Position numbers and translations under genes: made by a program. Below, piece by piece: positions 3,820 through 63,553 of a DNA stretch of 64,000 nucleotides (position 1 is its first letter; every line of letters begins with the position of its first letter). The DNA lies in assembly GCA_002269645.1 (NCBI GenBank), contig NIVC01001808.1, positions 130,383 through 194,382 of the forward strand, read 5' to 3'. The notes beneath the pieces are model-generated. The model searched no databases. It saw only the letters and a list, made by a program, of their open reading frames with translations, and had not been told where the DNA came from. This DNA comes from Macrostomum lignano (Eukaryota).

Positions 3820-3852
<33 letters not shown>

Positions 3853-3855
3853 TAG

Positions 3856-3915
<60 letters not shown>

Positions 3916-9500: not shown

Positions 9501-12500
9501 ATAGCTAATTCTACAGTGCTCGATCGCGAAGGCTACAGCTATGTTGATGTCACTGTAGAGGCTCGCGACTCGCCTGCATCTGGCACGACCTACACTATCA
9601 CGCAGACAGTTCGAATCGGAATATCGGATTATAACGAATTCCCGCCGGCTTTCACGCCTTCAACTGGACTTTACACACCTGCGATACCAGAAAGTGAGTA
9701 TAGCTACTGGTTTACAGACAGGTTTTCAACATCAGCTCTGCATCAAAAAGGGGTTTGTAGCTTAGTTAAGAGGTTGTAGCCTAGTGAAGGGGTTGTAGCC
9801 TTGTAGTGAAGGGATTGTAGCCTAGTAGTGAAAGGGTTGTAGCTTAGTGAAGGGGTTGTAGCCTTGTAGTGAAGGGATTGTAGCCTAGTAGTGAAAGGGT
9901 TGTAGCCTAGTGAAGGGGTTCTAGCCTAGTGAAGGGGTTGTAGCCTAGTGAAGGGGTTGTAGCCTAGTAGTGGAGGGGTTGTAGCCTAGTGAAGGGTTTG
10001 TAGCCTAGTGAAGGGGTTGTAGCCTAGTGAAGGGGTTGTATCCTAGTGAAGGGGTTGTAGCCTAGTGAAGGGGTTGTATCCTAGTGAAGGGGTTGTAGCC
10101 TAGTGAAGTTGTAGTCTAGTGAAGGGGTTGTAGCCTAGTGAAGGGGTTGTATCCTAGTGAAGGGGTTGTAGCCTAGTGAAGTTGTAGTCTAGTGAAGGGG
10201 TTGTAGCCTTGTAGTGAAGGGATTGTAACCTATTAGTGAAAGGGTTGTAGCCTAGTGAAGGGGTTGTAGCCTAGTGAAGGGGTTGTAGCCTAGTGAAGGG
10301 GTTGTATCCTAGTGAAGGGGTTGTAGCCTAGTGAAGTTGTAGTCTAGTGAAAGGGTTGTAGCCTAGTGAATGGGTTGTAGCCTAGTGAAGGGGTTGTAGC
10401 CTAGTGAAGTTGTAGTCTAGTGAAGGGGTTGTAGCCTAGTGAAGGGGTTGTATCCTAGTGAAGGGGTTGTAGCCTATTAGTGAAAGGGTTGTAGCCTAGT
10501 GAAGGGGTTGTAGCCTAGTGAAGGGGTTGTAGCCTAGTGAAGGGGTTGTATCCTAGTGAAGGGGTTGTAGCCTAGTGAAGGGGTTGTAGCCTTGTAGTGA
10601 AGGGATTGTAACCTATTAGTGAAAGGGTTGTAGCCTAGTGAAGGGGTTGTAGCCTAGTGAAGGGGTTGTAGCCTAGTGATGGGGTTGTATCCTAGTGAAG
10701 GGGTCGTAGCCTAGTGAAGGGGTTGTATCCTAGTGAAGGGGTTGTAGCCTAGTGAATGGGTTGTAGCCTAGTGAAGGGGTTGTAGCCTAGTGAAGGGGTT
10801 GTAGCCTAGTGAAGGGGTTGTAGCCTGGTGAAGGGGTTGTAGCCTAGTGAAGGGGTTGTAGCCTAGTAGTGGAGGGGTTGTAGCCTAGTGAAGCTGTAGC
10901 CTAGTGAAGGGGTTGTAGCCTTGTAGTGAAGGGATTGTAACCTATTAGTGAAGGGGTTGTAGCCTAGTGAAGGGGTTGTATCCTAGTGAAGGGGTTGTAG
11001 CCTAGTGAAGTTGTAGCCTAGTGAAGAGATTGTAGCCTTGTGGTTAGAGCGTTGGACTCTCAGCTTGTAGGTCAGGGGTTCGATTCCCGATCCAACTGAA
11101 ACAATTTGTGTCCTTGAGCAAGACACTTAACTCTGCATTGCTTCAGTTCACCCAGCTGTAAAATGGGTGCCAGCATTAGTTGAGGTAATTGAGGGTGGGT
11201 GTGGCGACCTCCCAGTCCTTGGACTGAACAGCTGTACGCAGCCTTCAGATGCGCCGCACAATAGCTGCGGCTGAGCTGTCGGTTGCACATCTGCTCATTA
11301 GGGCAGGTGTAATGTACAAGTACATATAGTATTATTCGTATATGTACCTGTGTGCGTAAATTAATTTGTATTTCTTTTAAACGTGTCCCAAATTCCAGCC
11401 ACGACAGCGGGCACCGCAGTGCAGACTATTGTTGCCACGGACCCGGACTACTCGAATACAGCAGTTGTGTGCGCCATTGCCGCTGGTAACAGTCTGAATC
11501 GGTTTGCAATCAACACGGCCGATAAGAAGCTTGTAGAGACCGCCTCCGTCATTCAGCCGGACAAGCCCACCCTCGATCCCACCATCTACCTTCTAACCGT
11601 GCACTGCGCCGATATGAACAACGGCACCCTGGGAACTCCAGTGCTGACATCGACAGCCTACATCACGGTCAATGTGACCCTCGTCAACGATTACGATCCG
11701 ACAATCACCCTGAACTCGACAACGATGGTGATCCCGGAAGACACCCCAGTATCCAGTTTCATTGTCAGTGTGACTGCGGACGACTTGGACTATGGAAATG
11801 ACGGTACTTTCACCATATCGCTGAGTCCAACAACACCGTTCGCGTATGTAGTACCATTATCTTGCTTCTACGTCGAAATCCTAAAATTTCTCCTTAGATT
11901 GAATTGAGTTATTACGCGTTCGATTAATTTCAGTTTAACCGGAGACCGAACAAAGCTTCTGCTGACAGAGGCTCTAGACAGGGAAACCAAGGATTCGTAC
12001 GTGATTGAAATGAGGGCACTGGATCAGGGGTCTCCAGCTAGGAGCAGCACCACAACGTTGACAGTCAGCATAACTGACGTCAATGATAACACACCTGTGT
12101 GCAGTCCCAACACGTACAATGTCAGCGTCACCGCGGACAGTGCAGCCACCCTAGTGGCAAGCATTCCTTGCACCGATGCCGATCTGGGTGACAACCAGCT
12201 ACTGGCCTATTCTTTTCTGTCGGGGGACACGCGAAATCTGACCCTTTCGTCTACCACTGGTAAGTCAGCGAGTTTTGCTTAAAAAAATATAACACAATCT
12301 ATATTCAACTCATATTGATAATTGGTCACATGACTTATCCAGGTGCCTTGACAACAACCTTTCTAACGTACGATTCCGCGGCGCCGTCCAAAACTCTGGT
12401 GATCACTGTGCGCGACAGCGCGACACCCGCCTCGGCGCAGCGCACAGCGACCGTCACAGTCACCGTGCACGTGCTGCCAAGAAACCTCGGCCCGCCAGTA

Positions 12501-15500
12501 TGGGGAACATTCAACCCGCCGTGGATAAGTGCCACTACCGCAATCAACTCGGTATCGGAGAATGCCGACGAAGGATTCGCAGTGTTCACCGCGGTTGCTA
12601 TTGACTACGACTCCGGGCCAGACGGTCAGGTGATCTACAGTCTGGCCTCAGTAACCGGTACGGACGGCACTACCAGCGTAGATCTCAGCTCCGTATTTAA
12701 TATCTCCAGCAGCTCTGGCCAGGTGCAGGTCAAGACTAAAGGCATCCTTGACCGAGAGGCGACGCCAGCCTACACCTACATCAACTTCGTTGTACAGGCG
12801 CGAGATAATCCCACCACTGGGACTCCAAACAGCATCATCCAGACTGTGCGGGTTGACGTTACGGACTTCAATGAGTTGGACCCAACGTTCACTGGCGATC
12901 CATTCTCTGCGACGCTTGTCGAAGGTAATTGGATAAATACAATGCAAAAAATTACTGTATGAAGACAAAAGTATTCATTTGTGCTTTTATTAAAAAATGA
13001 CTGAAATTTAATACCCGAAATTCAGATTCCGCCGCTGGAACTCTGGTGAAACAGATGGTTGTTTCGGATCCGGACAGCTCCAACACGATAATTACCTGCC
13101 AGATCACCAGTGGCAACGATCTAAGCCTGTTCCGCACAAACTCCGCCAACTCAACAATCATCGAACTGAACACAGCCATCGATCCGGACAGGCCGAAAAA
13201 TCATCCGCTTAGCTACCTGCTCATCGTCACGTGCTTGGATAATAATGGTGCTGGCAGTTACAGGACAGCAACAGCCAACCTCTCCGTAACCATCACTACA
13301 ACCAACGATCACACTCCAGTCGTATCGATACCGATTGGCAGTAGCATTACCTTGCCTGAAACCCAGGCTATCGGTGACGTTGCTGATATTAGCGTTGTTG
13401 ACCAAGACTACGGAACCGACGGCACAGTTGCGTGCTCGATAGCGCCTACTGGCACTTTTGGGTAAGTTTTGACAGGGAAAATTTTTTTGACTTCAATTTC
13501 CACCCATGAGGATCAACTCCGAAGGCAGAGTGTACATGTCTGACAAATAGAAAGTCAAGACCGCTGTACACCCTGTGGGAGCGTGTGTATAATTGCGTGC
13601 CTGAGTACAGTACACTTGTGCTCAGGAGTCAGCGGAATGTGCAGGATCGCATCACCGCTGGTCTTGGGGCGATTTAGCCAAAGATGTTATGTCAGAGTTT
13701 CCATATATATACACACATAGACGTATTGTATCACGCTTCGTATAATAAAAATAATTTAAAATTCATTAAACTATTGCAGGCTAACTGGCTGCACTAAGCT
13801 AACGCTCGTCTCAGGCTTGGACTATCCAACGGCCAGCTCCTACTCGCTAACTATCACGGCTGTCGATAGCGGGGCAACGCCGAGAACTGGCAGCGTCGTG
13901 GTGACAGTGACAGTGACCGACGTGAATCGCTACACGCCGTCCTGTTCGCCGGCGACTTACTCGGCTTCTGTATTGGAAACAGCAGCCAGCTTCCCAACGG
14001 CTCTGACGCCAGCCACAACCATCACCTGCACAGATGGGGATGGCAACGGGGTTTACTATCAGCTAGTAGACAGTTCTGTACCTTTCTCCGTAAACAACTT
14101 GACAGGTGTCCTGTCCCTCAACGGGCCAGTTGACTACGATAGCGCAGTACAAACGTATACGATACTTATTCGAGCGGTTGATCCGGCTGACTCATCCAAA
14201 TCGGGTCTGGCTACAGCAACTGTGGCTGTGACTGCCGCTAACGAGTTCACGCCGACGTTTCCTACGGCCACTGTCACGCTGTCGGTGTATGAGACCGTAG
14301 CCAGCTCCACGACGATAACGACATTCGCGGCGACCGATGCTGACTACTCACCGCATGCGATCACCAGCTACGCGATCGCATCAGGCAACACTGGCGGGAT
14401 GTTTGCAATCAGTAACGCTGGTGTCATCACGGTGGCTTCAGGCATGACGATCGATTACGAAGCTGTCTCCGGAAGTTCGCCCTATGTTTTGCAGATTGTG
14501 GCAACAGATGGTGGAGGCCTAACAGGTACAGGGACGATTAGTATCGTTATCCTGGACTCGAACGACCTGCCTCCAGTCTTTAGCCCAGCAAACTACTCCG
14601 CCAGTGTCCCCGAGGGCTCGGCTGCAGGTACCACCGTCACCACGGTAACCGCCACTGACGGCGACACGGCGCTGAACAATAACAACAAGATATTGTACTC
14701 CAAGCTAACTGGAGACTCGGCGGGCTATTTCAGTGTCAATTCTACCAATGGATTAATATTAACAACTGGTAATATACTGAACTACGACACCGTAACGCAA
14801 GTGGTCTTCACGGTGAGCATAACTATTTTTAATTTTTATAATTTCCGACGATACATTGTATTCATAAAGATTAGATGTTAAATTATAAACCATCAGACAT
14901 ACAGTTTATGTAGCTATTATACAAATAATCCAGTAGATTTATCTGAGGCCATATATTACTTATGTTAGAAACGATTCTACAGTAAGAATCGAGTTTAGGT
15001 ATTCTACAGAAAAGTGGTAAAAAAATCGAATTACAGGTCACAGCAGTGGATGGCAACGGTGCTGGACCACACACTGCCACAACTACAGTCACAGTCGCTG
15101 TTACGGATGTAAATTTACACGCACCAAGCTGCAGTCCAAGCACAGTCACGGTGAATAACATCCGTGAAGACGTTACAGTTGGTACTGCTCTCACCAGTCT
15201 GACTTCGCCGGTTGTGATTTGCACTGATGGCGATGCCAAAGACACCCTGACCTACACAATGAGTGCCAGTGCATCTGACAGCCACTTTGCAGTCAATCCG
15301 ACCAGCGGCGCAATCACTGTGTCCACTGCTCTGGACTTTGAAACCGCTAGAATCCATCAGTTTGAAGTAGTAGTCACTGACAGCGCTACTCCGGCCAAGT
15401 CGGTCAGTATGGCGGTGACCATCAATGTACTTGATGTTAACGAATTCAGCCCAACCTGCACAGTGCCAACAACCGCGTCCATGAATGAGGCTCAAGCAGT

Positions 15501-18500
15501 TGGTACCGCTGCCTACTCTGCAACTAGTTGCAGCGACTCAGACGGCACTGCAACAACGCTACAGTTCGCTCTAGTGCCCGGCACCCCGTTTCAAGTCAGC
15601 TCATCCGGAGCCGTCACTGCCAGCAGCGCACTGGATTATGATCCAGCCAGTGCCACCACCAGCTACTCAGTGCGTCTGATTGTGTCAGACAATGCACCCA
15701 CGATCAGCTCTCTCAGGTCCAGTACTTACACAACCGTTGTCTCGGTGACACCTGTTAATGAGTTTGCACCGGTGCTCACCTACACGGCTCTCACTGCTAG
15801 TCTAGCTGAGGATTCGGGAACAGGGACAGCACTAGCTTTGAAAACTATCGGTGGTACGAGCGTCTCAATGGCGGCAACTGACGCCGACCGAGGCCTGAAT
15901 CACGCCACCCTGACCTGGTCCATTGTTGGTGGAAATGACGCCGGTAAATTTTCGATCAATTCGGCTTCGGGAGCGCTACAAACAGCCGCGGCACTGGACA
16001 GAGAGACAGCCGCCAGCTACACGCTTCTGGTTAGCGTAACAGATGGAGGCGGCCTCTCTTCCACTGCTAACTGCACCGTGGCCGTCTCAGTGACTGACAT
16101 CAATGATAACACGCCAGTTTGCAATCCAGCTTCTCAGACCATCACCCTGTATGAGGGCGAAGCGGCCAAACAGCTGGTAGACTTCGGTGCATCGGGCAGA
16201 GTTACCGACGCTGACTCTGGAGTTAACGCGCAGCTGACCTTCAGTCTAAACAATGCGGGTAAGAAGAGCACTGTTTGATATTATTGCCATAATTATCCGC
16301 TATCATAATGAGTGAACTAACAAAAGAAACTCCACAATCTGATTTCAGCTGCTCTGAGCCCAGACTTCCAGCTTAGTGGCACTCGTCTCAGTAGCGTGCG
16401 CAGCTTCAGTTCGTCCGATACCCTATCAAACACGCTTTTAGTTGTAGCTACAGATGGTGGCAGCTCCGCTCGATCAGCCACTTGCTCTGTGACGGTTAAC
16501 ATAGCCGTCACAGCTAGGCCGCCTACATTTACAGTTGCAAACAGCGCTGTCACAGTGTCCGAGAGCTCTTCAGTGGGCACTCAGGTATTTCAATTTGTTC
16601 CCAACTTGGGCACTGGTGGAACAGGACCGCTTACAATGTCACTTGTCGACTTCTCTCCATCTGCGAATTCGAATCTGTTTGCGTTCGATGCCTCAACTGG
16701 CCGAGTTTCAGTAAACCAGGCGTTGGACTATGACTCAAGCTCAACAAGGGTCCCTTTGTCCTGATGGTAAAAGTAACCGACGCCACACCTCTAACTGCGT
16801 CGGGCACTCTGACCATCAGCCTGACTGACGTCAACGACAATGATCCACAGTTTGGATCTACTGTGGAGTTCACAAAAACTATAGACGAAAATGTTGGTTC
16901 CGCCTTTTTGACCCAAACCATCACCTGGACTGATGCTGATTCCGGCTTAAGCGGAATTGCAAACTGCTCGATTGTGGGGCAGTCCACGCCGGCGATTTTC
17001 ACCATCGACGCGACCAACTGTCAGCTGAAGACGACTGCCAATCCCGACCGAGAGAACTGCAGCCTGCACAATATCACTATCGCGCTTACCGACATGGGTA
17101 CCCCGCAGCGCACAACTCAAAGAAGCTTTTTCATCACGATTGCTGATCAAAACGACAACACTCCAGCTTTTGCTTCGGCCTCTTTTGCCGCCTCTGTAGC
17201 GGAGGAGTCAGCGCCGTCTACCACTGTTGGCACCTATGCTGCAACCGATGCAGACGCCGGTGTAAACGCCCAGCTAACGTACTCCCTCACGTCTCAGGAC
17301 GGCATTTCGGACGCGTCTAAGTTTACAGTATCTAGTGCCGGGGCTGTGACAACGGCGGCCACGCTCGACCGCGAACAGTTCGGCGTCTATCGCCTGTTGC
17401 TGCTTGCAAAAGATGGCGGGTCGCCACCACGCACGGGTACCACAACCCTTGTAATCACCGTTAATGATATCAACGAACACACGCCGTTGGTAAGACTTTT
17501 AAGTAGTACTCGTATATTTAAAAAATAACTGAATCTTTCGTTTGATCCAAATTAATTTTAAATGTATTGGACTGCTTAAAAAACAAATTTACTTACAACT
17601 CTTTCTATTGCAGTTCTCAGGCCTACCCGACACGGTGAAACTGGTGGAGAACTCCACGGCGGGCACGCTAGTGTACACCATCGCCGCTACTGACCGAGAC
17701 TCAACCTATGGCGCACTCACGTACAGCATCATTGACGGCAATAATAGCACCGCGTTCGCTATCGATGCCAGCACTGGCCAAGTGACCGTGGCCTCGCCTG
17801 TAACTCTCAATCGGGAGGCCATACCAGTTTACCAGCTTGTGGTGCAGGTTCAGGACAACGGTTCGCCAGCTAAATCGGCCACGTCAACTCTCACCGTGTC
17901 CGTGATGGATGTCAACGAGTTTGCACCTAGTTTTGCGTCCCCGACTGTTAGTTTCTCGGTAAGACGATTTATTGCCTTCATTCCTGTGTAGTACACATGT
18001 CTCTAAAAGACTCAACTTGACTATTTTGTTTTTCCTATCGTTCAGATTGCCGAAAACTCCCCGGTGGGCAGCACTCTAGGAACTGTAACTGCCACAGACA
18101 GTGACGGCCCGAGCCAGACAGTAAGCTATGCTGTTGCTGCCACTTTAGTGGGCACGGCCGGCCACTTTAGCGTCAACAGCGTCACTGGAGTGGTATACGT
18201 CAATCAGGCGGCTCTCGACCGAGAGACTCTGGCAACCTACGTGCTGCAAATTGCCGCCTACGACAATGGAGTTCCTTCTCTGACGTCTTCTCCGCTGTTG
18301 AATGTAACCATCTCTATCACGGACACCAACGACAACGATCCCGTCTTCAGTGCAGCCTACTACAACGCCTCAGTTAGTGAGAGTCTAGCTATTGGCTCGG
18401 TGGTGCTGACCGTGTCAGCGACGGATCAAGACGCCGGCAGCAACGCTGCGTTGACCTACTCGCTGCATTCGTCAGCAACGACAGCGAGTACATTTTTCTC

Positions 18501-19894
18501 GATCAATTCTGCCACAGGACAGCTAAGCACTATTGCAGCTCTGGACTACGAGACTAACACGGACTTTCTGTAAGCCAGTGCACATCTTTGTTACTCTACT
18601 TTGTTTTGAGTTAATTCCAATACATAATCCAACAGTACCATGCACTAAAAACCGTAACAACCGAATTGAATCACGCAGCTTCACCGTCATGGTCAAAGAC
18701 GCTGGAACGTCGCCTCAGCGCAGCTCCACAGCCAGCGTCTGGGTGTCTCTGAACAACGTGAACGAGCACCGGCCAGTGTTTGCCTCGACATTCTACAACT
18801 GCGAGGTGCCGTACAACGACGATACGCGAGCGATTCTGGCGACGCTGACCGCCACAGACGCCGACGCGGGGACTTTCGGTACGATAACGTCGTACAGTTG
18901 GAATAGTACAAACATCTACTTGTATCTGGGCGCAACTAGCGGTCAAGTGATTCGAAACTCCGATCAAGTCATGGAGCGCAACAAAAAGTACATCCAGTAC
19001 GCGATGGCCACCGACGGCGGAGGCCTAGTGTCCACGCAAAATGCCACAGTTCGCTGCGACTCCTTCCCGCCTGAGGACTACGTGGTGCTAATCTACACAG
19101 AGTTGTCAGAGAGCAGCTTCAACATGATGCTGACCAGCCTCACCGCCAGTCTGAACTCCACGCTGCAGGATGTCCACCCGGGCAGCTCAGTGAGGTTCTG
19201 GAAAAAGCAGAAGTCTGGAATCTACTGGGTTGGCTACTTCTATGCTCTAAGCAGCCTTAGCACTGATAGCATCTCCAATATTGGCCAGGACAAAGAATTC
19301 CTGACCCAGTCTCAACTGTTGGACAAGTGGCGACTTAAGTCAGACGGGACACCTACCAGCGTCCTCACGAGCAGCAGCTTCAGCAACTACCGGGTCAACA
19401 AAGTGGAGCCGTATCCAGACTCCGACAGTGACGCGTCAACAAACTGGTTGGATACGTGGTGGGGCAAACTCTGCCTGGCTCTGGGGGCCGCCGCCGGCGT
19501 TGCTTTGATTGGCGCCCTTGTCTACGGCTTGGTTAACGCATGCGGCGGCGCCGGGGCTGGCGCGTCTGCCGCTGCGCCGACGGCTGCAGCAGCCGGCCAG
19601 ACCACGGTAGCTCCGGCGGCTGGAGTCGGCGGCGGCAAAGCGACCAGTCAGCTGGCCCGGCAGCCCATGAACCAGCGGCACCTCCTGCCCAATTCGCAGC
19701 AGCAGCCGAAGCCGCCGCAACGATTCCAAGACACGCCGAGGCCGGACTTTAACGACAAGCAACAACAACAGCAGCAGCAGCAGCAGAAGCAGAACAACTC
19801 CAATAACAGGCAGAATCAGAACCAATCCAGGCAGAGTAACAACGATTCTGGCCGGGGCAGCGCCGCATCCGACGTTGTGATCTTTGAGCTTTGA
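6574..19894 (+). CDS. Large non-classical cadherin (~3,043 aa, ~25 EC repeats, membrane-proximal module, TM, Q/N-rich tail). 14 exons: 6574-6622, 7267-7653, 7730-8440, 8980-9693, 11399-11843, 11934-12259, 12343-12924, 13026-13461, 13780-14812, 15037-16258, 16349-17489, 17614-17958, 18046-18569, 18679-19894
   Basis: Signal peptide MIRILLLVAMQATLFPG; repeated DRE/DYE, DxD and DxNDN/DxNE-xP motifs; TM LCLALGAAAGVALIGALVYGLV. All introns are GT-AG and phase-consistent. The exons sum to 9131 nt, one short of a multiple of 3, which matches a frameshift near 16750. Confidence 0.92.
9750..11025 (+). repeat. 19-bp minisatellite (GTAGCCTAGTGAAGGGGTT), ~65 units, in cadherin intron 4
   Basis: Direct reading; runs directly into a SINE head. 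Confidence 0.96.
11026..11312 (+). mobile_element. tRNA-derived SINE, copy 1
   Basis: A-box-like TAGCCTTGTGG, B-box GGTTCGATTCC (11077-11087), central GTGTCCTTGAGCAAGACACTT...CAGCTGTAAAATGGGTGCC domain. Highly similar copy at 21000-21275. Confidence 0.85.
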
Positions 19895-20999
19895 ACTGCT
19901 GCCGCCAGGACTGACGAGGACACTCATAGAGCCCATAAAACTTGAGACTGCCACCTTGCTGTAGCAGCTGTAGCATCCATGGATAATAAAAACCTAGATT
20001 GGCCACCAATTGACAAAAAATTCCCATAACTATGGTTGAGGAAATAGCTGTAATCACAAGAGTATTTTATCTGAGACTCTCTGCAAGAAAATATTCACGA
20101 TATTCAAAATGCACTACCAACATGAAAATTGCGCATTAAACTTATCAAATGGTCAATATAGGCTTTCTATTATCTATTATCAGTTGAAATGTTATAAAAA
20201 GAGCTTCACCTCTTCATTGTTCGTCATTTTAAAGATATTATATACTGAAATTTTTGTTAAATTTATTCCAAGGATATACGTATTCAAGTGAGCACACTTT
20301 ACCCCCGATAATTATAGCGCCTTAAATGCCCGGTCCAAAAACCCTTCAACTGACTTATTTTTTGGTAGTTTAGCGGACAGAAGAAGCCTTATTTGTTGAT
20401 TGTTATATTTATTAAGTAGTATGAAATGTGTACATATTAATCGCTTTCTATTTCGAGTTTGTTTCACTCATTTCGCTCGCATTTTCAATAGATTTCTGTT
20501 TCTATTTTTAAACTAACGCGATTTTAGTTCGCTCGAATTAAATCAATTATTTCTCTTAAAAAATTCTATTTACGGAATTTTACAGTAATAAAAAGCCAAT
20601 TAATTTCTACTTTTGTACCGATCGCACTCATAATTATTGCTAGGATTTTGTTTTATTTCATAATTTACACTTCCTAAAAAGCTGCCAAAATGTTAGGTCA
20701 AAAGTTAGGCACGCAAGAAAGCAGTTTCATGGACGGTAAAATGTAATCAATGCAATTTACAGATGGCTGTTGGAATATTCGAGCACTTGTTAATACAAGT
20801 ATTGAGCTAAAAATTAAAATCACTTGGACAATGCGTAGCTAAAATCAAATTTACAATTTGATAGAAAAGTTGTGGCAGTGCAAATGCACTTTGACACAGG
20901 ACAGAAAATGTAAAATTTCAGGTCCGGGGCTCGAGCCCCAGCGATTTCATTTGCCTTCCCCTAGTCTGAAGCTAATTACTAGCTGGTTAATAATAATTG

Positions 21000-25948: not shown

Positions 25949-40796
<14,848 letters not shown>

Positions 40797-41860: not shown

Positions 41861-43916
41861 TACAAAGGTTATGTCATAAATTTGCTGACAAACTTACATA
41901 GTATCTGTTTCTTTTGTACTTTGGGACAGAATTTTTGTTACAGACTAAGGCTTTATCAATCTTATTGTCTATGGAAAATCTTTCCTCTGGCTTTTGAGAT
42001 AAGGCAGAAATTGAGTGGCATTCAAACCACCCTTCTAGCCAGTATGGAGAAAAGTGAAGCTACCAAGCGCACTGCCATTTGGTCATTGTGGAAGCAGCAG
42101 AAGAAGCAGGCTAATATTTACCGCGAGCGGCTGCAAATCTTTGGTGAAGATGCACCTTCGAAACAAACTGTGTCAAAGTGGGTGCAGCCCTTTGAGGATG
42201 GCTGGGAGACAGTTTATGATGCTCCCTGCACAGGTTCACTGCAGTCATCCACTTTCAGTGACAATATCTAGCGTGTGCAGCATGCCCTGAACAATGATTA
42301 TGGAGCAACCCTGAGGTAGTTAAAGGACTTGTTGGCAATACCAATGAAGAACATTCATCACATCATCTCTGACCATCTGCATATGACACGAGTTGTTGCA
42401 CAATGGGTCCCTAAACTGCTGACTCCTGTCCAACTGCAAGAAAGGGTCCAGATATGCCGCCACCTGCTCAATGCTAGTGATAGATCAAAATTTGATTTTG
42501 ATTTCGATATTCCAAATTTTGAAACTAATTTTGCATTGCAATAACTTTGATTTTGATTTCAAATTTCGACACCATTCATCAAAAATCATTTCAAAATATT
42601 GGTTATATTTTAACAATTTAGACATTGATGATCATGCTACACGATTAAGAAAATCTATAGGAAGTGAAAGGAAGCGCAGTTCAAAGACTCAGTGGGGAGG
42701 TGAGAATCACCTTTTCTATAAGAAAAGATTGTGCAGGGCACACACTGTTCCAGGCCTTGTGCTGCACCCACCTCAACCTCCACAAGCCCACTGGCTGAAC
42801 TCATTGGCGTGGATTTTAATTGGCTAAAGACTTAAAGCCTTAATGAAATGGATATAGGCTACTCATATCTAGATCTTCAGCTTAAACAGTGGTGAAGTAT
42901 AATACAACTTCTACTGTATTTTTATGTACGAGTTTATAATACATAATACACTAGCATTTTCTATTTTGTATTTTTAAAGTAAGTTAAATCTAAAGTATTC
43001 TGGTTTAAACATATTAAAGATACTTTTTATAAAACATATAAGCTCTACAGAGGCAAGGTGTTAACCTTTTTGCATGATTAGCGAAAAAGTAAAAATTTGT
43101 TAAGCTCTAAAAATTTCAATTTTGATTTCAATTTTGATTCTAAGGAACCAAAAATTTTGTTTTCGATTTTGATTTGAAAAATAATTTTGATCCATCATTA
43201 CTCAATGCCTATCAAAACAAGCCCAACTTTCTTGGCCGCCTGGTGACTAATAATGAAATGTGGTTTCACTTCTATGAACTGGAAACGAAACAGCAGAGCA
43301 GCATCTGGAAGGCTACTCACGAACTCCCACTGGTCAAGGCCAAGGTGGTGCAGTCAGCAGGTAAGCACATGGCCACGGTGTTCTGGGACAGAGAAGGCAT
43401 CTTGTTAATCGAGTGGCTACCTGAAGGCAGAACCATCAATGCCCAGTACTACTATGAAATATTGGAACGGCTGCATGAGAAGATCAAGAGTGAGTGCCGA
43501 GAAAGGATCACCAGGGGCACTGTGCTGCAGCAGGACAACGCTAGGCTGCATACTTGCAATGCAACTATAGATGTCATCAGGAGACTAGGCTTCGAGTTGC
43601 TGCCTTACCCTGCCTATTCTCCTAAACTGGCCCCTAGTGACTATTGGCTGTTCCTTAAAATGAAAGAGCCTCTTTGTGGCCATTGCTATGGAAGCCTTTT
43701 TGCATCCAGCTTGGCTATCAGCCAGTAGGTATGTGGGACCCCCACAGAATTCTTCACCTAGGGCATCAGCAAGCTCCCAGAGAGATGGCACAAATGTGTG
43801 CAGCTTGGGGATGACTATGTTGAGAAGTGCAATGTTGACAATTAGCTGTTCTTTATTTTGTTTCTTGTTTGTTTGCAGTTTGTAGTTTTTAGTGAATTTA
43901 TGACACAACCCTCGTA
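41861..43916 (+). mobile_element. Decayed mariner (Tc1/mariner) transposon, ~1.32 kb after removing a nested insertion
   Basis: Imperfect TIRs TACAAAGGTTATGTCATAAATT and AATTTATGACACAACCCTCGTA with TA ends. Transposase remnants WVPKLL, TNNEMW, QDNARLH, YSPKLAPSDYWLF, with stops and damaged catalytic Asp residues. Confidence 0.9.
42475..43200. mobile_element. hAT-like non-autonomous element (726 bp) nested in the mariner
   Basis: Perfect 8-bp TSD CTCAATGC (42467-42474, 43201-43208); TIRs TAGTGATAGATCAAAATT and AATTTTGATCCATCATTA. Confidence 0.85.
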
Positions 43917-53809: not shown

Positions 53810-54905
53810 GTAGGTGGATTTTCACAATTTCTGTTAGCCGTTCTATTTAGAAGATCAACCCAACTGACTCCCGAGAATGTGCTTTTAAGAATTAAATAAG
53901 CCTTATGCATGTAAGCTCAAAGTTATCAACTCTCTCACCGGCTTCTGATGCGAGACAGCACGTCCAACGTACCAAAAGAAAACCCGCCGAGTGGATTATT
54001 CATGACTGCAGATGCTAAAAGTATTTCAGTATTGCGTCTTGAGTGTTTCTGGTTTTCATGTTCGAAAACCTTACTGGGACTACTGTGTTACAGTGTGCTT
54101 TGCAATATTTCAGGCAAAATTCTATGGCTCAACTTCCCTTTTCCTGTGTACACGTAGAGAATTTTTATACAAAATACGAGCATAAAATGTTCAATAGTAA
54201 GTTTGTAAAAAATGACCTTTTAATGTCGCTTGTTATAAGTAATAAATACGTTCGCAGGCAGCATACCACCCAATAATGCGTTTTCACTGCTCTTCAAGCA
54301 ATACTCCTACACTTTACTGTATATATACATAGACGGCACTTTACCTTAGTAAAGTCGACCCCCTCAAATAAAAACGACTTGTTATAATTACGAGTATTTC
54401 AAACGAAGAAATAAAGAAGACTGCCTGATAGTCCCTTTGACATTCTCTGCGTCTGGCTTACAACGATCGTAGCAAAATAGTTGGTTTAACAAGTTTTCCT
54501 CTTGCTTAACAAGTAGAAAGCTGCGCTGCCAGCATATTCGACGTGACTGTGTGCTCGAAATGCTTTGAGTGAGTAAACCAAGCGAGAGTGACAAAGAGAG
54601 AACGGGCGAATGTAAGCAAATGACGGGCTTAGCAAACAATTCACTGTTCAACTGCCATGAGCTGCGCCACTCTAGGCGCATTCGTACATGTGGGCGCTTG
54701 CGCTCGGCTAAAGCTGACTTCTATAGTGCATCCTAACTTCCATCTAGCCCACTCTCCTCATATTATTTCCACCTGGACTCGAGACAGCCAAGCCAAGGCC
54801 TGCTGCTGCCAGTCTCAACTCCCGGGGCAACTAGGCGAATCCTGCCAAAGTAGAAAAAAAAATTGGCATCAAGGAGCTAAACCCGCAGCGCGGCTAGAAT
54901 AGTCG

Positions 54906-55041
54906 ATGGCTGCCGAGGCGACGGATGCGGCTTTGAGTCATCAAAGGCGCCGAGCATCAGCGCTGGTGCAGCCGCCACAAGCGGCAGGTCGCGGCAGAGT
55001 TGACATCAAAAGTCGCGACGGCGTGAGAAATTCACTTCGTG
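54906..55041 (+). CDS. Candidate nesprin alternative first exon a (45 aa, ...GVRNSLR)
   Basis: ATG, open frame, phase-1 donor G|GTGAGG giving SLR|DEQER. Confidence 0.55.
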
Positions 55042-55991
55042 GTGAGGCGACGAAGCGTAACCAAGTTTGCCCGTAGCAACTAAAATAGGTATAATTTTGC
55101 ATCGAGCAGTTATATTACTCAGACCGGAGACTCTAGAAAAATTGCAGGCAGTTATTCAGTCAATTTGTTGTTTTTCACTGGGGTTTTCAACTTCTTTTGA
55201 ATTGATTCACTTCGCCAATCACTCCGACAGCATGCTTTCAGACCAGAACTTCCTTTTTCCCATTTTTACGATCCAATGGCATTACGCCGTAAAAAGATAG
55301 GCTACAGTGGACGCCCATGAAACTGTATATGGAAAATATTTTTACTGCAACTTTATGACATTTGCATTGGGTGTTGCATTGTTTAGAATAATTAGCCGTA
55401 TGACAACTGAGGCATGAGGTGGATCCCCTGCCTACGCATGCCTAGTGCAGCTCAGGTCACGCTGAGGATGAAAAATCCTCGCGTACACCTGCCGTTTCCT
55501 GGTTCTCAACAGCCTCTGCAGTCCCATCCAATAAGGCATGGTGGTTGCCGGCAAGGGGACAATAACGTGCATTCTTTTTGGAAGCAATCGAAACAAAAAT
55601 CCAGCTCTCCCGTTTCCTATTTGATTGTTTTTTTACAATCCCCTCCCCTCTAGCTGAGGATGATGCATTGCTCAGCATCCCCGCTGCTCTTCAGTCAATG
55701 AAAAACGCCTTGGTTTAGCGCATCTTCCTTCCTCATCAATCCTAACCAATCCCATCATCCCGCACGCTCGGCTCAGCGCACCTCAGCTTACTCGCTTTGA
55801 TAGAAAAGGAAAGGCAAAGCGAAAGAACCATTGAAATGAAGTTATAGACGCTCTGGGATGCTATTGCTTCTGCAGTTCATTTATTGAGTTATCCGCCATC
55901 CCGGAAGTCCCACCGGTTGAGCGGGAAGTGCAGCCTGGCTGGATGAGCGGCTAACAACGTCGGTTATCGAATTCGGGCAGCCTCTGCAAGG

Positions 55992-56025
55992 ATGAACATC
56001 GGGCTGACTGTCTGGAAGCTTAAGA
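55992..56025 (+). CDS. Candidate nesprin alternative first exon b (MNIGLTVWKLK)
   Basis: Phase-1 consensus donor A|GTGAGT giving KLK|NEQER. Confidence 0.55.
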
Positions 56026-56169
56026 GTGAGTTTTATTTACAATTTGTAGTTGAGACCGAGACAACATTCTCTGTATCCTAGTTCTGTGGGTCGGCAACCA
56101 TTTGAACCTTAAGGGCAGACAATTCAGCTTATGGCTGCTGGTCAGCGCTGGTAGTCAGAGTATGTAGGA

Positions 56170-56340
56170 AAACAGATTAGAGGTGAGAGATGATGATAGA
56201 GAAGAGAAGGGAGAATAGAGGAGAGAAGAGAGAAGTGAGAGAAGAGGAGAGGAGAAGGGAGAGAAGAAGAGAAGAGAAGAGGGAGGAGAGGAGAAGAGGG
56301 AGAGGAGAGAGGAGGAGAGAGGAGAAGAGCGAATGAAAAA
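56170..56340 (+). repeat. GA-rich polypurine tract
   Basis: Direct reading. Confidence 0.85.
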
Positions 56341-56989
56341 AGATTAGGAAAGTTCGGGAGGACAGAGCAGGGCGGAGCAAGTGACACAAGTGAGCATGCT
56401 TTTTAAAGGAGTTTGCCGACCTTTGCATCCGTCAATTTGCTCTGAAGGTGGCTATTGTATGTGTAAGCGGTATACTGACTCAATAAACCGGGCGGGGCAT
56501 TTGGTGTTTACTATTAACGTTGTATTGAACTGCAGAACTAAATTAATATTCTTGGTTTATGCTTTAGAAGATTTAAAAAGGGTGCTGTAAGATGGCTGTC
56601 AGCTCCACCTTGTTATTGGGAGGAGTCGTATAGCGCAGAATCGAGGGCTGAATTATCCAGCTACGGCTTTAGATTTTGTGTTGAGCCTGAACGGAGAGAA
56701 GACAGATGGCAATTTTTTGCTAAGGAAAGGAAAGAGAAGGCGTCGCCATTACCAGTTTATCAATGATGCGCATGAAATTCTATACCAATACCCGTCCTTT
56801 TCATGAGATGCTGCAAGTTCCTTGCATGGAATCGGCAGGATCCAGAGACAGAAATTTGCGAGACAAATGCAGCCACATAAGAAAGAGAAATAGCTGAATG
56901 GGGTGTATGAAACTTGCGAGACGGAAGCAAAAAGCGTCCTTAGCTCACTTTTTCTGGCTTTTTGGCAGCCTCATCAGGTTTAGGAATCT

Positions 56990-58130
56990 GAAAGATTTGG
57001 CATATTGTGAAGGATTTGGTATATTGTGAAGGATTTGGTATATTGTGAAGGATTTGGTATATTGTGAAGGATTTTGTATATTTGTGAAGGATTTGGTATA
57101 ATGTGAAAGATTTGGTATAATGTGAAGGATTTGGTATATTGTGAAGGATTTTGTATATTTGTGAAGGATTTGGTATAATGTGAAGGATTTGGTATAATGT
57201 GAAGGATTTGGTATAATGTGAAGGATTTGGTATATTGTGAAGGATTTTGTATATTTGTGAAGGATTTGGTATAATGTGAAGGATTTGGTATAATGTGAAG
57301 GATTTGGTATATTGTGAAGGATTTTGTGTATTTGTGAAGGATTTGGTATATTGTGAAGGATTTTGTATATTTGTGAAGGATTTGGTATATTGTAAAGGAT
57401 TTGGTATATTGTGAAGGATTTGGTATATTGTGAAAGATTTGGTATATTGTGAAGGATTTGGTGTATTGTGAAGGATTTGGTATATTGTGAAGGATTTTGT
57501 ATATTGTGAAGGATTTTGTATATTGTGAAGGATTTGGCATATTGTGAAAGATTTGGTATATTGTGAAGGATTTGGTATATTGTGAAGGATTTGGTATATT
57601 GTGAAGGATTTGGTATATTGTGAAGGATTTGGTATATTGTGAAGGATTTGGTATATTGTGAAAGATTTGGTATATTGTGAAGGATTTGGTATATTGTGAA
57701 GGATTTGGTATATTGTGAAGGATTTTGTATATTGTGAAGGATTTTGTATATTGTGAAGGATTTTGTATATTGTGAAAGATTTGGTATATTGTGAAGGATT
57801 TGGTATATTGTGAAGGATTTTGTATATTGTGAAGGATTTTGTATATTGTGAAGGATTTGGTATATTGTGAAGGATTTGGTATATTGTGAAGGATTTGGTA
57901 TATTGTGAAGGATTTGGTATATTGTGAAGGATTTGGTATATTGTGAAGGATTTGGTATATTGGGAAGGATTTGGTATATTGTGAAGGATTTGGTATATTG
58001 TGAAGGATTTGGTATATTGTGAAGGATTTGGTATATTGTGAAGGATTTTGTATATTGTGAAGGATTTGGTATATTGTGAAAGATTTGGTATATTGGGAAG
58101 GATTTGGTATATTGGGAAGGATTTGGGTAG
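56990..58130 (+). repeat. 19-bp minisatellite (TGTGAAGGATTTGGTATAT), ~60 units
   Basis: Direct reading. Confidence 0.96.
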
Positions 58131-59080
58131 TTCAGAAGATTTTGGAGTCCACTTTAAAGTAGCTTGAGCGCTTCTAAGCAGAAGATCAGTTTAGACAGAC
58201 TGGGTGGAGCCAATCAGCTAGTGAGACTGCAGTGTTGAATGATGGCGATGCGCTCTCCCGACATTAATGAGCCTGCAATTTGGCTCGCGAATTTGAAATT
58301 GCCGTGCTTAAGCTCTCATTCATTGTGTAAAAAGGCATCATTTTTTGAGTAGCTTTTTTAAGGCCAATTTTATGGTTGATACGAAACGATTGAAGAAGTA
58401 CCTTAGTTACGAGCAAGAGGCTAGAGATAGGTAAAGAGATCAAGGTATTCTATACCCTATCCCGCTTTATCTTTTGTATATGGGATTCATCAACCCTGTT
58501 ACTTCGGTTCTGGCAAACTCTGCACTAAGCAGGAGATGCTGAACTGCCAATGAAACTGGATCACCTCTTCTTCATCTCGTCCCCCCTCTCTCTCTCAATC
58601 TTCCTGCGAAAGCCGCTTTCAACCGGGCAATTGCATAGCGACCCATTCACCCACCCAGTTTATACTTCCGGCCGCATCTCTCAGCCGCCTCCCCTAACTG
58701 AGCTGGCGCAAAATTGCTTTCAACAGCTGAGATCGGGGCGGCCATGAACTGACAGAGAGCTGAGATATAGAGACCTGGGCACTTTGGTTTGGCAAGAGAG
58801 AGAGAGAGAGAGAGAGAGACAGCGAGCAGTGACTGCGGTTGCTAAACGAAGGAAGAAAATCAGAATTGCAAATCAACTTGCCAAGCTTTTGGCACATCTG
58901 CTGTGGCGTTTATATTGCCAACGTGTGTAAGCCATGACACAGGTGTGCCTAATTTCTGGCTCCGTTAGTTCGGTGTTGCCTGACAGTGTCTTGTCAAGCA
59001 AAAGTCAAGCACTCCGCAACTCATTGGGGAGTAAAATAGCGATCGATACCAGCTCAAGCTTGATCCCGGACACACCTGCC

Positions 59081-59159
59081 ATGCAGCCTCACTGGCTGGC
59101 TAAGCAGCAGCAAGAGGGCAGCACCAGCCTTGTTGAGGCCCGGGCGCTCTTCTACCGAG
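59081..59159 (+). CDS. Candidate nesprin alternative first exon c (MQPHW...ARALFYR)
   Basis: Phase-1 donor G|GTGAGA giving FYR|DEQER. Confidence 0.55.
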
Positions 59160-59589
59160 GTGAGACCGGGCAACAGTTGTTCAACTGCATGTCTCCATTA
59201 GAGGGCATTGCTGCAAATTCTAAATTTAAACTGACTTCTATGACAGCCAGATTAATAGTACATAGTTCGACCTGTCTCCGTGTATGAGCGACATGCTGTT
59301 TTAGCCGAAACGGAGGTTCAATTAAAAACGCAGGAAAATTCATGGCTGAAATTGACACGTGCAGTGTAGATAGCTCGTTAAGTAGTTAGTTAGCAAGATT
59401 GCACCTTATCTATAGATTTCTGATCCAAACTAGACCTTTCGGTCAGTGGAAAGATAAAAGAATGTATATAAAATAGTAGGGTTAAATCAAAAATTAAAAA
59501 GAAACGACGTCTCAGCAAAGCGACTGAGTACGAGGGGCTTAGTACTAGCTATACGTATACAACATACCATACAATTGACTGGTGAAAGC

Positions 59590-59722
59590 ATGGCAGACAA
59601 TGAAGCTAACAGTTCAATTAGCAAAGAATCGCCTGAATCTCAAGATGCAGCAGCTAGCCAGAGCTGCACCAGTGCAGAGCCCAGGCGGAGCATTTTCGGG
59701 GAGAGAATTCTCGGCTTTAAAG
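59590..59722 (+). CDS. Candidate nesprin alternative first exon d (MADNE...ERILGFK)
   Basis: Phase-1 donor G|GTGAGA giving GFK|DEQER. Confidence 0.65.
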
Positions 59723-60116
59723 GTGAGAAAAAGATTTGGGATTTCGAGCAGAACTGCTACTAGTTGGGACTTTTTCGGCCCTGCTGTCTTCCTTACGTAT
59801 TTATTCACCCGCCTCTGATTCACCGCCCGGCAAAGCCAGCCATGCGGCCAGTCACTTCCAAACTCATCAAGTGCATCGAGGATTAATTATGCAGCATTTG
59901 GTGAGCACGTCACAATCCTTATACCGTACACCCGCACTGTCCAAAAACCCTGTACCGGACTGCCGCAGAATTAGAATGAAAGCGCGCGTTAGAACTGAGA
60001 AAGAGACATGCAGTGAAGAGAAAGGGAAAGAACTGAAGAGGCGTTGGTGTGAGTCGTAGTCAATGGTTGAAGGCTTCTGAGTCCGGAAGGCAAAATTCTA
60101 TGCCGCAAAAGAGGAA

Positions 60117-60651
60117 ATGACGCAACAACACAGACATGAGCGCCAACGTCCGCGAAGTAGATCGCTCGCTGAGCCCGTTGCCGAGCCCGCTGAGTCAAAT
60201 GCCCCCGTCAGCAGAGTCCTGGGTCGGTCTGCGGATGGCCGCACCGGGCTGGCCCTGTTCCAGGCCAGCTGGCTCAATGCCTTCGCGTGGGACGACACTC
60301 GGCGGCAGCATCGCCAAGAGTCAGATCACAGCCAGGAGCTGCTGACGCAACGTTCGCAGGAATCTCTTGCCGATTCTGACTCCATCGCTTTGGAGCTGTT
60401 TGACTTCCCCGAAGACGCGAGTCCTGCGGTAGCCGATGCCGATGAGGGCAAACATCGGGCAGAGTCTCAGTGGATTCTTCGACCGTCATTGGCGATGTCG
60501 CAGGTCAAGCTGCAACCAATGACACCGGTTAGCAAGGCTGTCCCTAAAGTAACGACGTCAGAGAATGCCTCAGAGGTTGCAGCCAACAGTTCGGATGCAG
60601 ACGGAGTCGACATCACGGATGTGATCGATGCAGCTATTGTTATTTTCCGGT
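60117..60651 (+). CDS. Candidate nesprin alternative first exon e (178 aa, ...DVIDAAIVIFR)
   Basis: Long ORF, phase-1 donor T|GTAAGA giving IFR|YEQER. Parallels the recalled plectin AERAVIRIA|DERDRVQKK junction. Confidence 0.65.
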
Positions 60652-61417
60652 GTAAGAAGGTTCATCGGCAGGATTTTTCGACTCTCTATTAAATACATAT
60701 ATAGTTGCTTAAGGTCTTATAGACCCTACTAAAAAGTGTCAGAATGTAAAATTTGATTATGTAATCCCCTTAGCCTCTCTGATGACTCGAAGAGTGTGCA
60801 CCGAGTGACCTTTACGACTAGTGAATTATAGATAAACATTTTCTGAAGAAATGTAAGTTTTGTATTAAAAAGTATGCTTAAATGATGAAAGAATATACTT
60901 TGTATTAAGTTCGAAGTGTAATGAAGACTGCCCTAATGAATATCGAATTAGAATTTGTGATGTTAAGAGTGAGCCAACCTTCCCCAGCAATTCGCTTTGC
61001 TCTTTCGCCCTGACCCGAATCTCTATCCACTCAGGTACTCTGCACAAATTAATAAATGAACGGGTTTGCGGCATTTTATTTGACAGTTTGTTGCCTTTTC
61101 TACTATGGGGAGGCTGCACTGCGGCCGAGCTGCTCACTGGATGGACCGTCTTGTCTTCTTTTGCTTTGCACCCTCCCCCTCGCTTGCTTTTAAAACTTTT
61201 GTTGTTATTGAATTAGAGTAAGCGACACCGAGAGGCCCCCGAGCTTCCGTAGCGGTTTCTCGCCCTCTCTCCGGATTTTATTTGTCTAACATTTTCTTGG
61301 AATTCGAATCTCCAAGCAACAGCTTATCAGGCACTTTAAAGACACAATTTTCCCAATTAATTTGCCTATTTCTTGACTTGAAGGGCCTTAAGAAAGGCCC
61401 AGCTCAGCTGCTCAGAC

Positions 61418-61460
61418 ATGAGGCGATCAAGCCTTATGACCAATGTGAAGAGTTTAAGAG
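61418..61460 (+). CDS. Candidate nesprin alternative first exon f (MRRSSLMTNVKSLR)
   Basis: Phase-1 donor G|GTATCA (weak) and a 74-nt intron, giving KSLR|DEQER. Confidence 0.55.
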
Positions 61461-61534
61461 GTATCAACTTATACTCAATTGCAAATTTAATGTGGCATGT
61501 CCTCCAATTCTGCCAACACCCAAAATCATTCCAG

Positions 61535-63553
61535 ATGAGCAGGAACGAGTTCAGAAGAAGACATTCACCAACTGGGTTAACACCTATCTCATCACTTGCC
61601 AGCCGCCCTGCAAGATCAGCGATCTGTTCACGGAGATCAAGGATGGCACCAGGCTGCTATTACTGCTGGAGGTGCTGTCTGGCAACAAGCTGCAGAAGGA
61701 GAACCGGGGCAATATGCAGCGGGTGCATTGCCTCAGCAATGTCAGAACTGCGCTTAGCTTCCTAGAGTCCAAGCAGGTGAGGCAGATTTGAGGCAGAGCC
61801 ATTCCTCAGCTAACTGCGTGAATTCCAAACTGATGGGTGCTCACAATCTGAGCAGGGTATACTCCAAAATAAAGAAATGAGCAGAGTAGAAGAGGCTTGG
61901 GCTTTCTGAGGTCCAATGAGTACCTATGCCCCCATACCTGCCCCGGCTCAATGGAGTAGGGACTCATTCTAGTTGCCTTGGCCCGTTGGGCTTGTTTGCT
62001 TAGAGCAAGTGAGCTCCTCTGCAGACCCCTTCAAGAAGAAAACAGACGGGCGACGAGAAGAGCAACAATAAGTGTATTATCTTCTGCCCTTCCTAAACTG
62101 GCAAGTTCAACCGATGCTAATCTTGCAGCTCGTTTGCCACACTGCGGCGTCATTTTAGTAGCCCATTTCCACTGCGGGTTTTACAAACTGCATGGTCTAA
62201 GCGGTATCAGGGGGCAGGGTTGAGCTATGCGGCGAAACTCGCTACGTCACGTCAGATGGCTCTACGCGCCTAGTGGCGTGGGCAGAGATATTGCTAGAGC
62301 TCAAGCAAAGTGCATCTCGTATGCCAGCGTGGTCTCTGCTCTCTCCGCAGTGAGACTTGGTAGTGAGACTGTTTCGGTCGCTCACACTTCTGTCTGAAAA
62401 GAATGTGCCCCAGAAAAGGAGCGCGCAATATACCTCAACATGCCTCTGGTTTTTGGCCCTAGTCGCCTCAGCCAAGGGCAGAAAGGGCGAATGGGATGCA
62501 ACTTTTCGTTAAAGTTTACTTAAAATATGAACACTATGATAGGAAGAGAAGGGATTCTAAGACAATAGCATCTTTGGATGCCACACTTTGAAGTCTTAAG
62601 GGCTTTTATCGAAAGTTTTCAATGGGTTACAACTATACAAACAAACAAACTGCTGAGACTACAATCTCACACAAATTCTCCCCTCAGATCAAACTGGTCA
62701 ACATCAACCCTGCCGACATTGTGGACGGCAAGCCAACCATCGTCCTTGGTCTCATGTGGACTATTATCTTGTACTTCCAGGTAATTGAAATTGTTATTTT
62801 TTATATTTAATGCAAACGTTCCCCAGAATCTACGCCCCAATTAGGAAGGCAACACAGAAAAAAAATTTGAATAAACTACATGCAGGTTTTGACCTTGTGC
62901 AGTCACTATTGTTACGATCCTGAAATATGATGTTTAAAGCAAAACGCATCAGCCCTGAAAGCTATCAGGCCTAAGATATCAGCATCCTTTGATCTTCGGC
63001 ATCAAAGCCCCCCTTTAGTCATGGCTTAACCCTAACGCTCTCTTTGATGCTTGGCCTACCAACAACTCCCAATTGACCCTTGGCATCTGAGCAACATCTC
63101 AAATTCCCCCATGAGCCTTGATATCACAGCAATTCTCCTCAAGAGTCACAGCACTTCAAAAATCCACGCATGACTCATGCCATGAAGCCATGGAGTAAAG
63201 CTACACGTATTCCGTGTCAAAAAACTCGCAGATCGAGGAGCAGGAGGACATGATTCGCAAGAGCCTGGAAGGCACAGAGCTCGCAGAGAGAGGCGAGCTG
63301 TTCAAAGGCTCGGCTAAGAAGGCCCTTCTAGCCTGGGCGCAGAACAATCTGGGCGACAAGTACGACGTCGATTTGAAAGACTTCGGCAGCAGCTGGCGCG
63401 ATGGAGCCGCATTCAACGCCATGGTGCACAACATCGACCCCAGCCTGGTTGACATGGACGCCTTGCGGAGCCGATCGAATAGGGAAAACCTGGAAGCCGC
63501 GTTTCAGGCGGCAGAGAACGGTCTCAATATTCCGCGGCTGTTGGACGCCGAGG
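61535..63553 (+). CDS. SYNE1: Nesprin (SYNE1/MSP-300/ANC-1-like) N-terminal tandem calponin-homology actin-binding domain. Common exons 61535-61776, 62688-62780, 63232-63553; continues beyond the window
   Basis: EQERVQKKTFTNWVN...LLEVLSG...IKLVNINPADIVDGKPTIVLGLMWTIILYFQ|IEE...SAKKALLAW...DFGSSWRDG...RSNRENLEAAF...IPRLLDAE. The MWTIILYFQIEE, AKKALL and RSNRENLE motifs are nesprin-1-like rather than spectrin-, actinin- or plectin-like. Confidence 0.85.
62826..63180 (+). mobile_element. Diverged fragment of the 43.9-49.5 kb composite repeat family in a nesprin intron
   Basis: AATCTACGCCCC...TTTGAATAAACTACAT, CTTAACCCTAAC and GAGCCTTGATATCACAGCAATTC are shared with 43935-44700 and 47530. Confidence 0.55.

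Follow-up and report, generated by a model that had tools for sequence, protein, structure and literature searches.

The 5′ end of a nesprin-type gene lies at the right-hand end of a 64,000-nucleotide stretch of the genome of the flatworm Macrostomum lignano (contig NIVC01001808.1, positions 130,383 to 194,382 of the forward strand; the whole stretch is called the window, and position 1 is its first letter). Judged from the sequence, it is probable that the exon opening the first calponin-homology domain (CH1) of this gene is preceded by an array of alternative coding leader exons, most of them with starts of their own, which are spliced to that one common exon. The first-pass annotation of the window had proposed a plectin-style array of six coding first exons with six promoters. 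The enrichment of a junction motif, the match of one leader (L3) to the N-terminus of an M. lignano protein, a long open reading frame (ORF) at L5, a TATA box before L4 and several ATG-free stretches all fit an array of leader exons, while first-exon status, mutually exclusive use, the count of six and the 'six promoters' are putative. The leaders, the common exons and the TATA box are as follows, with a slash marking the exon junction:

54906–55041, plus strand: candidate leader L1, 45 residues plus one base (MAAEATDAAL...DGVRNSLR/D), basic (isoelectric point, pI, 11.8), donor GTG/GTGAGG.
55992–56025, plus strand: candidate leader L2, 11 residues (MNIGLTVWKLK/N), donor AGA/GTGAGT, which among the six comes nearest to the full consensus.
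59081–59159, plus strand: candidate leader L3, 26 residues (MQPHWLAKQQQEGSTSLVEARALFYR/D), donor GAG/GTGAGA.
59465–59473, plus strand: TATA box TATATAAAA, 117–125 nucleotides (nt) upstream of the L4 ATG.
59590–59722, plus strand: candidate leader L4, 44 residues, acidic and Ser-rich (...PRRSIFGERILGFK/D), donor AAG/GTGAGA.
60117–60651, plus strand: candidate leader L5, 178 residues, mostly disordered, acidic (...DVIDAAIVIFR/Y), donor GGT/GTAAGA.
61418–61460, plus strand: candidate leader L6, 14 residues (MRRSSLMTNVKSLR/D), donor GAG/GTATCA, separated by a 74-nt intron from the common exon.
61535–61776, plus strand: common exon 2, with a phase-1 start (AT GAG CAG...), encoding EQERVQKKTFTNW...FLESKQ, the first part of CH1.
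62688–62780, plus strand: exon 3, encoding IKLVNINPADIVDGKPTIVLGLMWTIILYFQ, the end of CH1, donor GTAATT; found by tblastn with the M. lignano protein model P0001.
63232–63553, plus strand: exon 4, encoding IEEQEDMIRK...IPRLLDAE, the linker and most of CH2; found by tblastn with P0001.

Reading and translating the region directly gave the six ATG-initiated segments, their coordinates and their phase-1 donors exactly as first annotated. The length of each segment is 1 mod 3, and all six donors fit one acceptor, 61535, at the start of CH1. The junctions SLR/D, KLK/N, FYR/D, GFK/D, IFR/Y and SLR/D (L1 to L6), each continuing into EQERVQKKTF, and the range of leader lengths from 11 to 178 residues were found as described there too. 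Five of the six donors are of the GT[GA]AG (GTRAG) type, the sixth being the GTATCA of L6, and the leaders differ strongly in charge (pI 4.8 to 12.0) as well as in length. According to the mechanism that we propose, several leaders, probably four to six, would lie upstream of the first CH1 exon, and each, having its own ATG and phase-1 donor, would be spliced directly to the common acceptor, so that one actin-binding domain (ABD) would be common to all products, which would be distinguished by N-terminal extensions of between 11 and 178 residues.

The three common exons encode a tandem calponin-homology ABD, and the gene extends past the window end (64000), which comes just after the CH2 exon. 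In the homologue search the best match of this domain was the M. lignano CH-domain protein P0001 (82% identity), followed at 45–59% identity by tapeworm, mollusc and vertebrate proteins that are mostly named nesprin-1/SYNE1, with Msp300-named ones also present and with 50–59% for the SYNE1/nesprin-1 matches that come directly after P0001; none of the 101 matches carried a spectraplakin name. No nesprin ABD is contained in the PDB, where the ABDs of beta-spectrin, plectin and MACF1 have nearly equal scores, that of plectin being among the closest solved structures (E 1e-50). The earlier naming of the gene as a nesprin agrees with the closeness of its ABD to nesprin-1/SYNE1, and we call it nesprin-type from this similarity, the spectrin-repeat rod and the KASH domain falling outside the window. 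The acceptor shared by the leaders, cattccag (TTCCAG = 61529–61534), matches both acceptor motifs of M. lignano, CAG and [TC]TNCAG (PMC8629364). The phase-1 intron just before the EQE(R/A/I)VQK(K/R)TF exon is present in the window and also in the scallop Pecten maximus (ttttccag/AT GAA CAG). The variation of the junction residue between D, N, Y and H would imply the same intron position in birds and fishes: fish nesprin models have D, N and Y variants, and two nesprin-1 models of the kiwi Apteryx (P0048 and P0051) differ before the same junction only (...WRDL/Y vs LQ/H). An exact 30-mer from exon 2 had no match in metagenome contigs, and no record was returned when P0001, the L5 ORF and an ORF with a SAP domain were looked up by exact sequence.

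The likeness of the six junctions was compared with chance by scanning every GT[GA]AG on the plus strand of 54500–61534, a site qualifying when it is phase-1 and has an in-frame ATG before any stop; this motif is the dominant cis donor of M. lignano (PMC8629364). Five of the seven qualifying sites end in a hydrophobic residue followed by K or R ([LFYIMVW][KR]), compared with a dipeptide background of 4.3% (binomial P 2.8e-6), and elsewhere in the window such an ending was found at 1 of 37 qualifying sites (Fisher P 1.1e-4). The remaining two sites, 56396–56462 (GYCM/Y) and 59889–60048 (KRRW/Y), are absent from the first-pass list; they are without the junction motif, score worst for codon usage and are probably due to chance. 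Splice-site consensus as the cause of the K/R at position −1 was ruled out, the −3 and −2 bases being other than MAG in most of the six leaders. Recent duplication of the leaders was excluded as well, no DNA repeats linking the leader exons having been found. Since no such repeats join the exons and the two SLR endings, of L1 and L6, are written in unrelated codons (TCA CTT CGT vs AGT TTA AGA), the likeness of the junctions is one at the protein level.

Several observations weigh against the array. The compatibility of ATG and phase-1 GT alone is at chance level: 7 of the 20 GT[GA]AG sites in the scanned region qualified, where about 5 would be expected from the background of about 27% elsewhere in the window (17/64 and 20/77). 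The junction motif was set after the data had been seen, so the P values given for it are optimistic, the effect being large even so. Codon-usage log-odds, trained on the cadherin and ABD exons of the window, are slightly negative for L4 and L6, in a test of low power owing to weak codon bias. For five of the six leaders no homologue was detectable, and the six leaders concatenated gave none at E ≤ 10 in a word-indexed search nor at E ≤ 0.001 among 1.8 billion representatives; the searches with the ABD and the cadherin returned only proteins of up to about 720 residues, so that giant nesprin models with other leaders would be missed. A core promoter element is recognisable at L4 only. Among the single leaders, L2 has just 11 residues and an upstream ATG at 55943 that opens an upstream ORF of 3 codons, and the donor of L6 is not GTRAG.

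The chance rate of compatible donors, the undetected homologues and coding-potential scores that do not discriminate would all suit an explanation in which no more than two leaders, or even a single one, would be in use (most likely L3 plus L6 or L5), the others being ATG..GT frames that arose by chance within the promoter region or a long 5′ intron. It would also suit the scallop control, in which the same scan without the motif filter yielded nine candidates, three of them annotated exons, and which thereby calibrates the precision of the approach. We regard this explanation as clearly unlikely, for it leaves unexplained the hydrophobic residue plus K/R at five of seven GTRAG candidates, the ORF of 191 codons at L5, the TATA box before L4 and the long ATG-free stretches, and the candidates lacking the motif (56396 and 59889) are also those with the worst codon scores. 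The ATG-free stretches measure 218, 147, 128 and 277 nt before L1, L3, L4 and L6, respectively, and the six upstream gaps taken together have a P of 0.015. As for the claim that convergence of the junctions was unlikely to arise by chance, it holds for the enriched motif and fails for phase-1 compatibility as such, and a structural constraint fits the likeness better than an unexplained convergence does.

This constraint is suggested by an AlphaFold2 model of P0001 (29 homologues), in which one unbroken helix spans residues 15–53 and passes through the junction R34/D35 with a predicted local distance difference test (pLDDT) score of 83–85. Because the model helix runs through the splice junction, the leader ends can be viewed as N-terminal continuations of CH1 helix A. 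All six leaders have a hydrophobic residue at −2 and K or R at −1, and a further one at −5 (in L1 at −6; in L3 the residue at −5 is alanine). On the helix, these hydrophobic residues would face the same way as V, F and W of EQERVQKKTFTNW. Across nesprin homologues, position −2 before [DN]EQE is commonly hydrophobic, the leaders ending in ...MQRLQ/DEQE (mammals), ...FFQYLR/D (fish), ...NILR/S (Schistosoma) and ...IQQLA/N (bivalves). In the proposed mechanism, the last leader residues would prolong helix A and hence be constrained, the remainder of each leader being free to vary, and the likeness of the junctions appears to be better explained in this manner. In the complexes of beta-III-spectrin, utrophin and filamin, F-actin is contacted by the residues that immediately precede CH1. 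By analogy, swapping the segment before CH1 is a plausible way to tune actin binding, and N-termini specific to cell types could tune actin binding or targeting as they do in plectin, dystrophin/utrophin and spectraplakins, functional differences between the flatworm leaders being presumed in this proposal.

The single leaders may be ranked by the evidence at each of them. L3 appears very likely to be real. Its end aligns with the N-terminus of P0001 (MQPHWLAKQ...EARALFYR/D vs MSWIRRE...ESRALFYR/DEQERVQ), chiefly through the shared RALFYR, and the tblastn match is weak by itself (E 0.86); P0001 begins at an L3-type ATG. An in-frame ATG upstream of L3, at 58934, would make it 75 residues long, and both the 147 nt between 58934 and 59081 and the 190 nt before 58934 are free of ATG.

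L5 is likely to be a true leader too. Its ORF, 191 codons to the stop, is the longest on the plus strand of the region, with a P of 0.0035 for the region and 0.0005 locally in a Markov simulation. A single-sequence AlphaFold model of low confidence consists mostly of disorder, with a helix at 44–86 and a C-terminal helix at 166–177 abutting the junction. No Pfam match and no homologue of this leader were found, and transposon remains occur nearby in the window, as might be expected if the L5 ORF, and perhaps others, were the decayed remnant of a mobile element, or a small gene of its own, situated in the 5′ intron of the nesprin gene and ending near a phase-1 GT by accident. Such an origin is extremely improbable, given that no transposon signature or repeat was found at L5, that the end of the ORF has the hydrophobic-R junction seen elsewhere in the array, the right phase and a GTAAG donor, and that its C-terminal residues are predicted to be helical, matching an extension of helix A. 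The predicted helix 44–86 is rich in aromatic residues. After an acidic Ser/Asp tract, L5 also contains ELFDFPED, which resembles an FFAT-like VAP-binding motif, though weakly, position 2 being L. Basophilic kinase-type sites (RRxS / RxRxxS) are present in L1, L5 and L6, and the leader of the M. lignano protein P0001 has sites of the RR-S type.

L1 and L4 are each good candidates, and their use seems quite probable. L1 has an in-frame stop directly upstream, lies downstream of the ATG-free 218 nt and coincides with a rise of GC content from about 34% to 46%. The TATAAA before L4 occurs only once in 54000–61535, 123 nt before the L4 ATG, and no ATG is found from there to 59590. L6 and L2 are the least secure leaders, on account of the weaker GTATCA donor of the former and the 11 residues of the latter. 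L6 may be called fairly probable: the 277 nt preceding it are the longest non-repeat ATG-free stretch within the array, non-GTRAG donors are tolerated in this gene as exon 3 uses GTAATT, and its end NVKSLR/DEQE aligns with RIKALA/DERE of beta-spectrin and resembles RVRSLK/D of the scallop. For L2 the judgement is evenly balanced. A possible seventh mini-leader, at 55276–55288 (MALR/H), ends in a hydrophobic residue plus R before a phase-1 GTAAAA donor and is too short to judge.

The question whether the leaders are first exons involves the trans-splicing that affects 30–39% of Macrostomum genes (PMC5730564, PMC8629364). Of [TC]TNCAG, the motif of trans-splice and strong cis acceptors, the region has 11 copies, one being the common acceptor; within 300 nt upstream of a leader it was found for L2 only (55870–55875, 116 nt upstream). 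That the other five have no strong acceptor motif at this distance favours true first exons, and most leaders are probably such exons with start sites of their own. One could also imagine that the leaders are real coding exons and not six independent first exons, with one or few promoters giving a long transcript and the choice being made by mutually exclusive splicing, cassette inclusion or spliced-leader trans-splicing ahead of a leader. This arrangement would accord with the frequency of trans-splicing, with the motif upstream of L2 and with the presence of a TATA box at L4 alone; moreover, an in-phase CAG at L2 and at L6 would give in-frame cassettes of 45 nt (55981–56025 and 61416–61460). 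Yet neither of these CAGs has a pyrimidine-rich tract, and by our own estimate one such CAG would be present by chance in about 60% of cases. Splicing of L1 to the acceptor at 55876 meets a stop codon, five leaders lack the upstream acceptor motif, and the model P0001 starts at an L3-type ATG. Furthermore, established C. elegans work, cited in PMC8629364, shows that an outron becomes an intron once a 5′ splice site lies upstream of it, so trans-splicing to an inner leader would still require a start downstream of the previous donor. We therefore hold an arrangement with shared promoters to be distinctly improbable and retain the array of leaders with mostly separate starts, in which the splicing of each donor and the separate promoters are deduced.

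The design itself is known from other genes and animals. It had been supposed that an array of this kind is unusual for an invertebrate nesprin, and the scallop contradicts this: three Pecten maximus RefSeq models (XP_033734089/091/092, 'spectrin beta chain, erythrocytic-like' X1–X3) are identical after the junction and have three leaders, ...IQQLA/N, ...IAHYQ/D and ...RVRSLK/D. At the scallop locus the first exons are at 10001, 22333 and 29185, each with a phase-1 GTRAG donor, and the common exon is at 39434 behind ttttccag, in the phase of the flatworm gene. The next gene model downstream, of 10,435 residues, is presumably the remainder of the giant nesprin. As in the flatworm, three ATG-containing first exons of a nesprin-type gene join one acceptor before EQERVQKKTF (junctions QLA/N, HYQ/D and SLK/D). 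The scallop differs in having three annotated exons spread over 29 kb, in contrast to six flatworm candidates in 6.6 kb, and only one of its leaders ends in K/R; the scallop exons are RefSeq predictions, whereas the flatworm leaders are candidates read from the genomic sequence. An unannotated ATG segment of 14 residues in the scallop (33892–33934 of locus L001, ...GDKIFK/D), with an AAG/GTGAGA phase-1 donor and 5.5 kb upstream of the common exon, may be a fourth first exon there.

Plectin has about a dozen alternative first coding exons over tens of kb, which are spliced to a common exon starting CH1 and give isoform-specific N-termini. Plectin isoforms are described in PMC4664173. Plectin thus shares with the flatworm gene many first coding exons that enter a common CH1-starting exon; unlike it, plectin is a plakin and not a nesprin, and its isoform-specific targeting is experimentally proven, where that of the flatworm leaders is putative. 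In dystrophin/utrophin and the spectraplakins (MACF1, dystonin and Drosophila shot), short unique first exons with separate promoters are spliced to the exon in which the tandem CH domains start. These belong to other gene families and have fewer leaders, far wider spacing and usually well-mapped tissue-specific promoters. Multiple start sites have also been reported for nesprins (PMC3388047), and for Drosophila Msp300 start sites were postulated at exons 1, 3, 18 and 21 (PMC8616381), which likewise speaks against the supposed singularity of such an arrangement among invertebrates. For vertebrate SYNE1 and Msp300, in contrast to the flatworm gene, the published emphasis is on internal promoters that lead to short isoforms without CH domains, and a dense array directly before CH1 is not described in the SYNE1/Msp300 nesprin literature surveyed. 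The design being already known from scallop, kiwi, plectin, dystrophin and spectraplakins, what is particular to the flatworm is the number of up to six leaders and their compactness (6.6 kb).

A further-reaching version of this proposal would have all six leaders used from closely packed starts and belonging to ancient bilaterian leader classes: one class would comprise L6, L1, scallop X3 and the V/I-K/R-x-L-x ending of beta-spectrin type, and another would unite L3 and the aromatic ending of FFQYLR type in fish nesprin-1. The nesprin of the bilaterian ancestor would then already have swapped extensions of CH1 helix A, tuning actin binding or targeting by cell type. We consider this version doubtful. 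If the array itself were confirmed, the diversity of leaders before the ABD, so far associated with plakins and dystrophin, would be an old and general feature of nesprins, and it could be asked how N-termini beside CH1 alter the actin binding and subcellular targeting of nesprin. The locus would be convenient for this purpose, holding all promoters and leaders in less than 7 kb of an animal in which transgenesis is possible (PMC5730564). It would also be a warning for annotation, as a single gene model would miss most of the N-terminal isoforms.

The remainder of the window is occupied by the following features:

About 1000–20000, plus strand: very large FAT/dachsous-like cadherin gene, whose long exons end in phase-1 GTGAGT/GTAAGT donors.
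29333–33331, minus strand: Ty3/gypsy-type pol ORF, uninterrupted over 1332 residues (protease, reverse transcriptase, RNase H and integrase).
About 36100–38300, minus strand: ORFs that contain SAP and DBC1 domains and point to a CCAR1/CCAR2-like gene.
43174–43728, plus strand: fragment of a mariner/Tc1-type transposase (Pfam Transposase_1), within the AT-rich 40–54 kb stretch.

The leaders are not part of a neighbouring plus-strand gene, because what lies upstream of them is the plus-strand cadherin (1–20 kb), the pol ORF, the minus-strand CCAR/DBC1-like gene, the mariner fragment and the AT-rich stretch to about 54 kb. The best match of the cadherin ORF in the homologue search had an identity of only 34%, and the pol ORF is probably that of a young long terminal repeat retrotransposon. 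The mariner fragment holds the sole upstream phase-1 donor with a hydrophobic-K ending; the corresponding candidate (43258–43489, ending in IK/N) was dropped, as it lies inside the transposase fragment. No match was obtained in an Rfam scan of the whole window. Three simple repeats are found inside the array. A 19-bp minisatellite, TGAAGGATTTGGTATATTG, occupies 56989–58126 between L2 and L3 (59.6 copies, 94% matches) and accounts for a spurious minus-strand ORF of 186 residues and a strong GC skew there. The other two are an (AG)12 microsatellite at 58795–58819 and, at 56196–56333, a GA-rich tract of some 130 nt that consists of purines only (AGAGA type).

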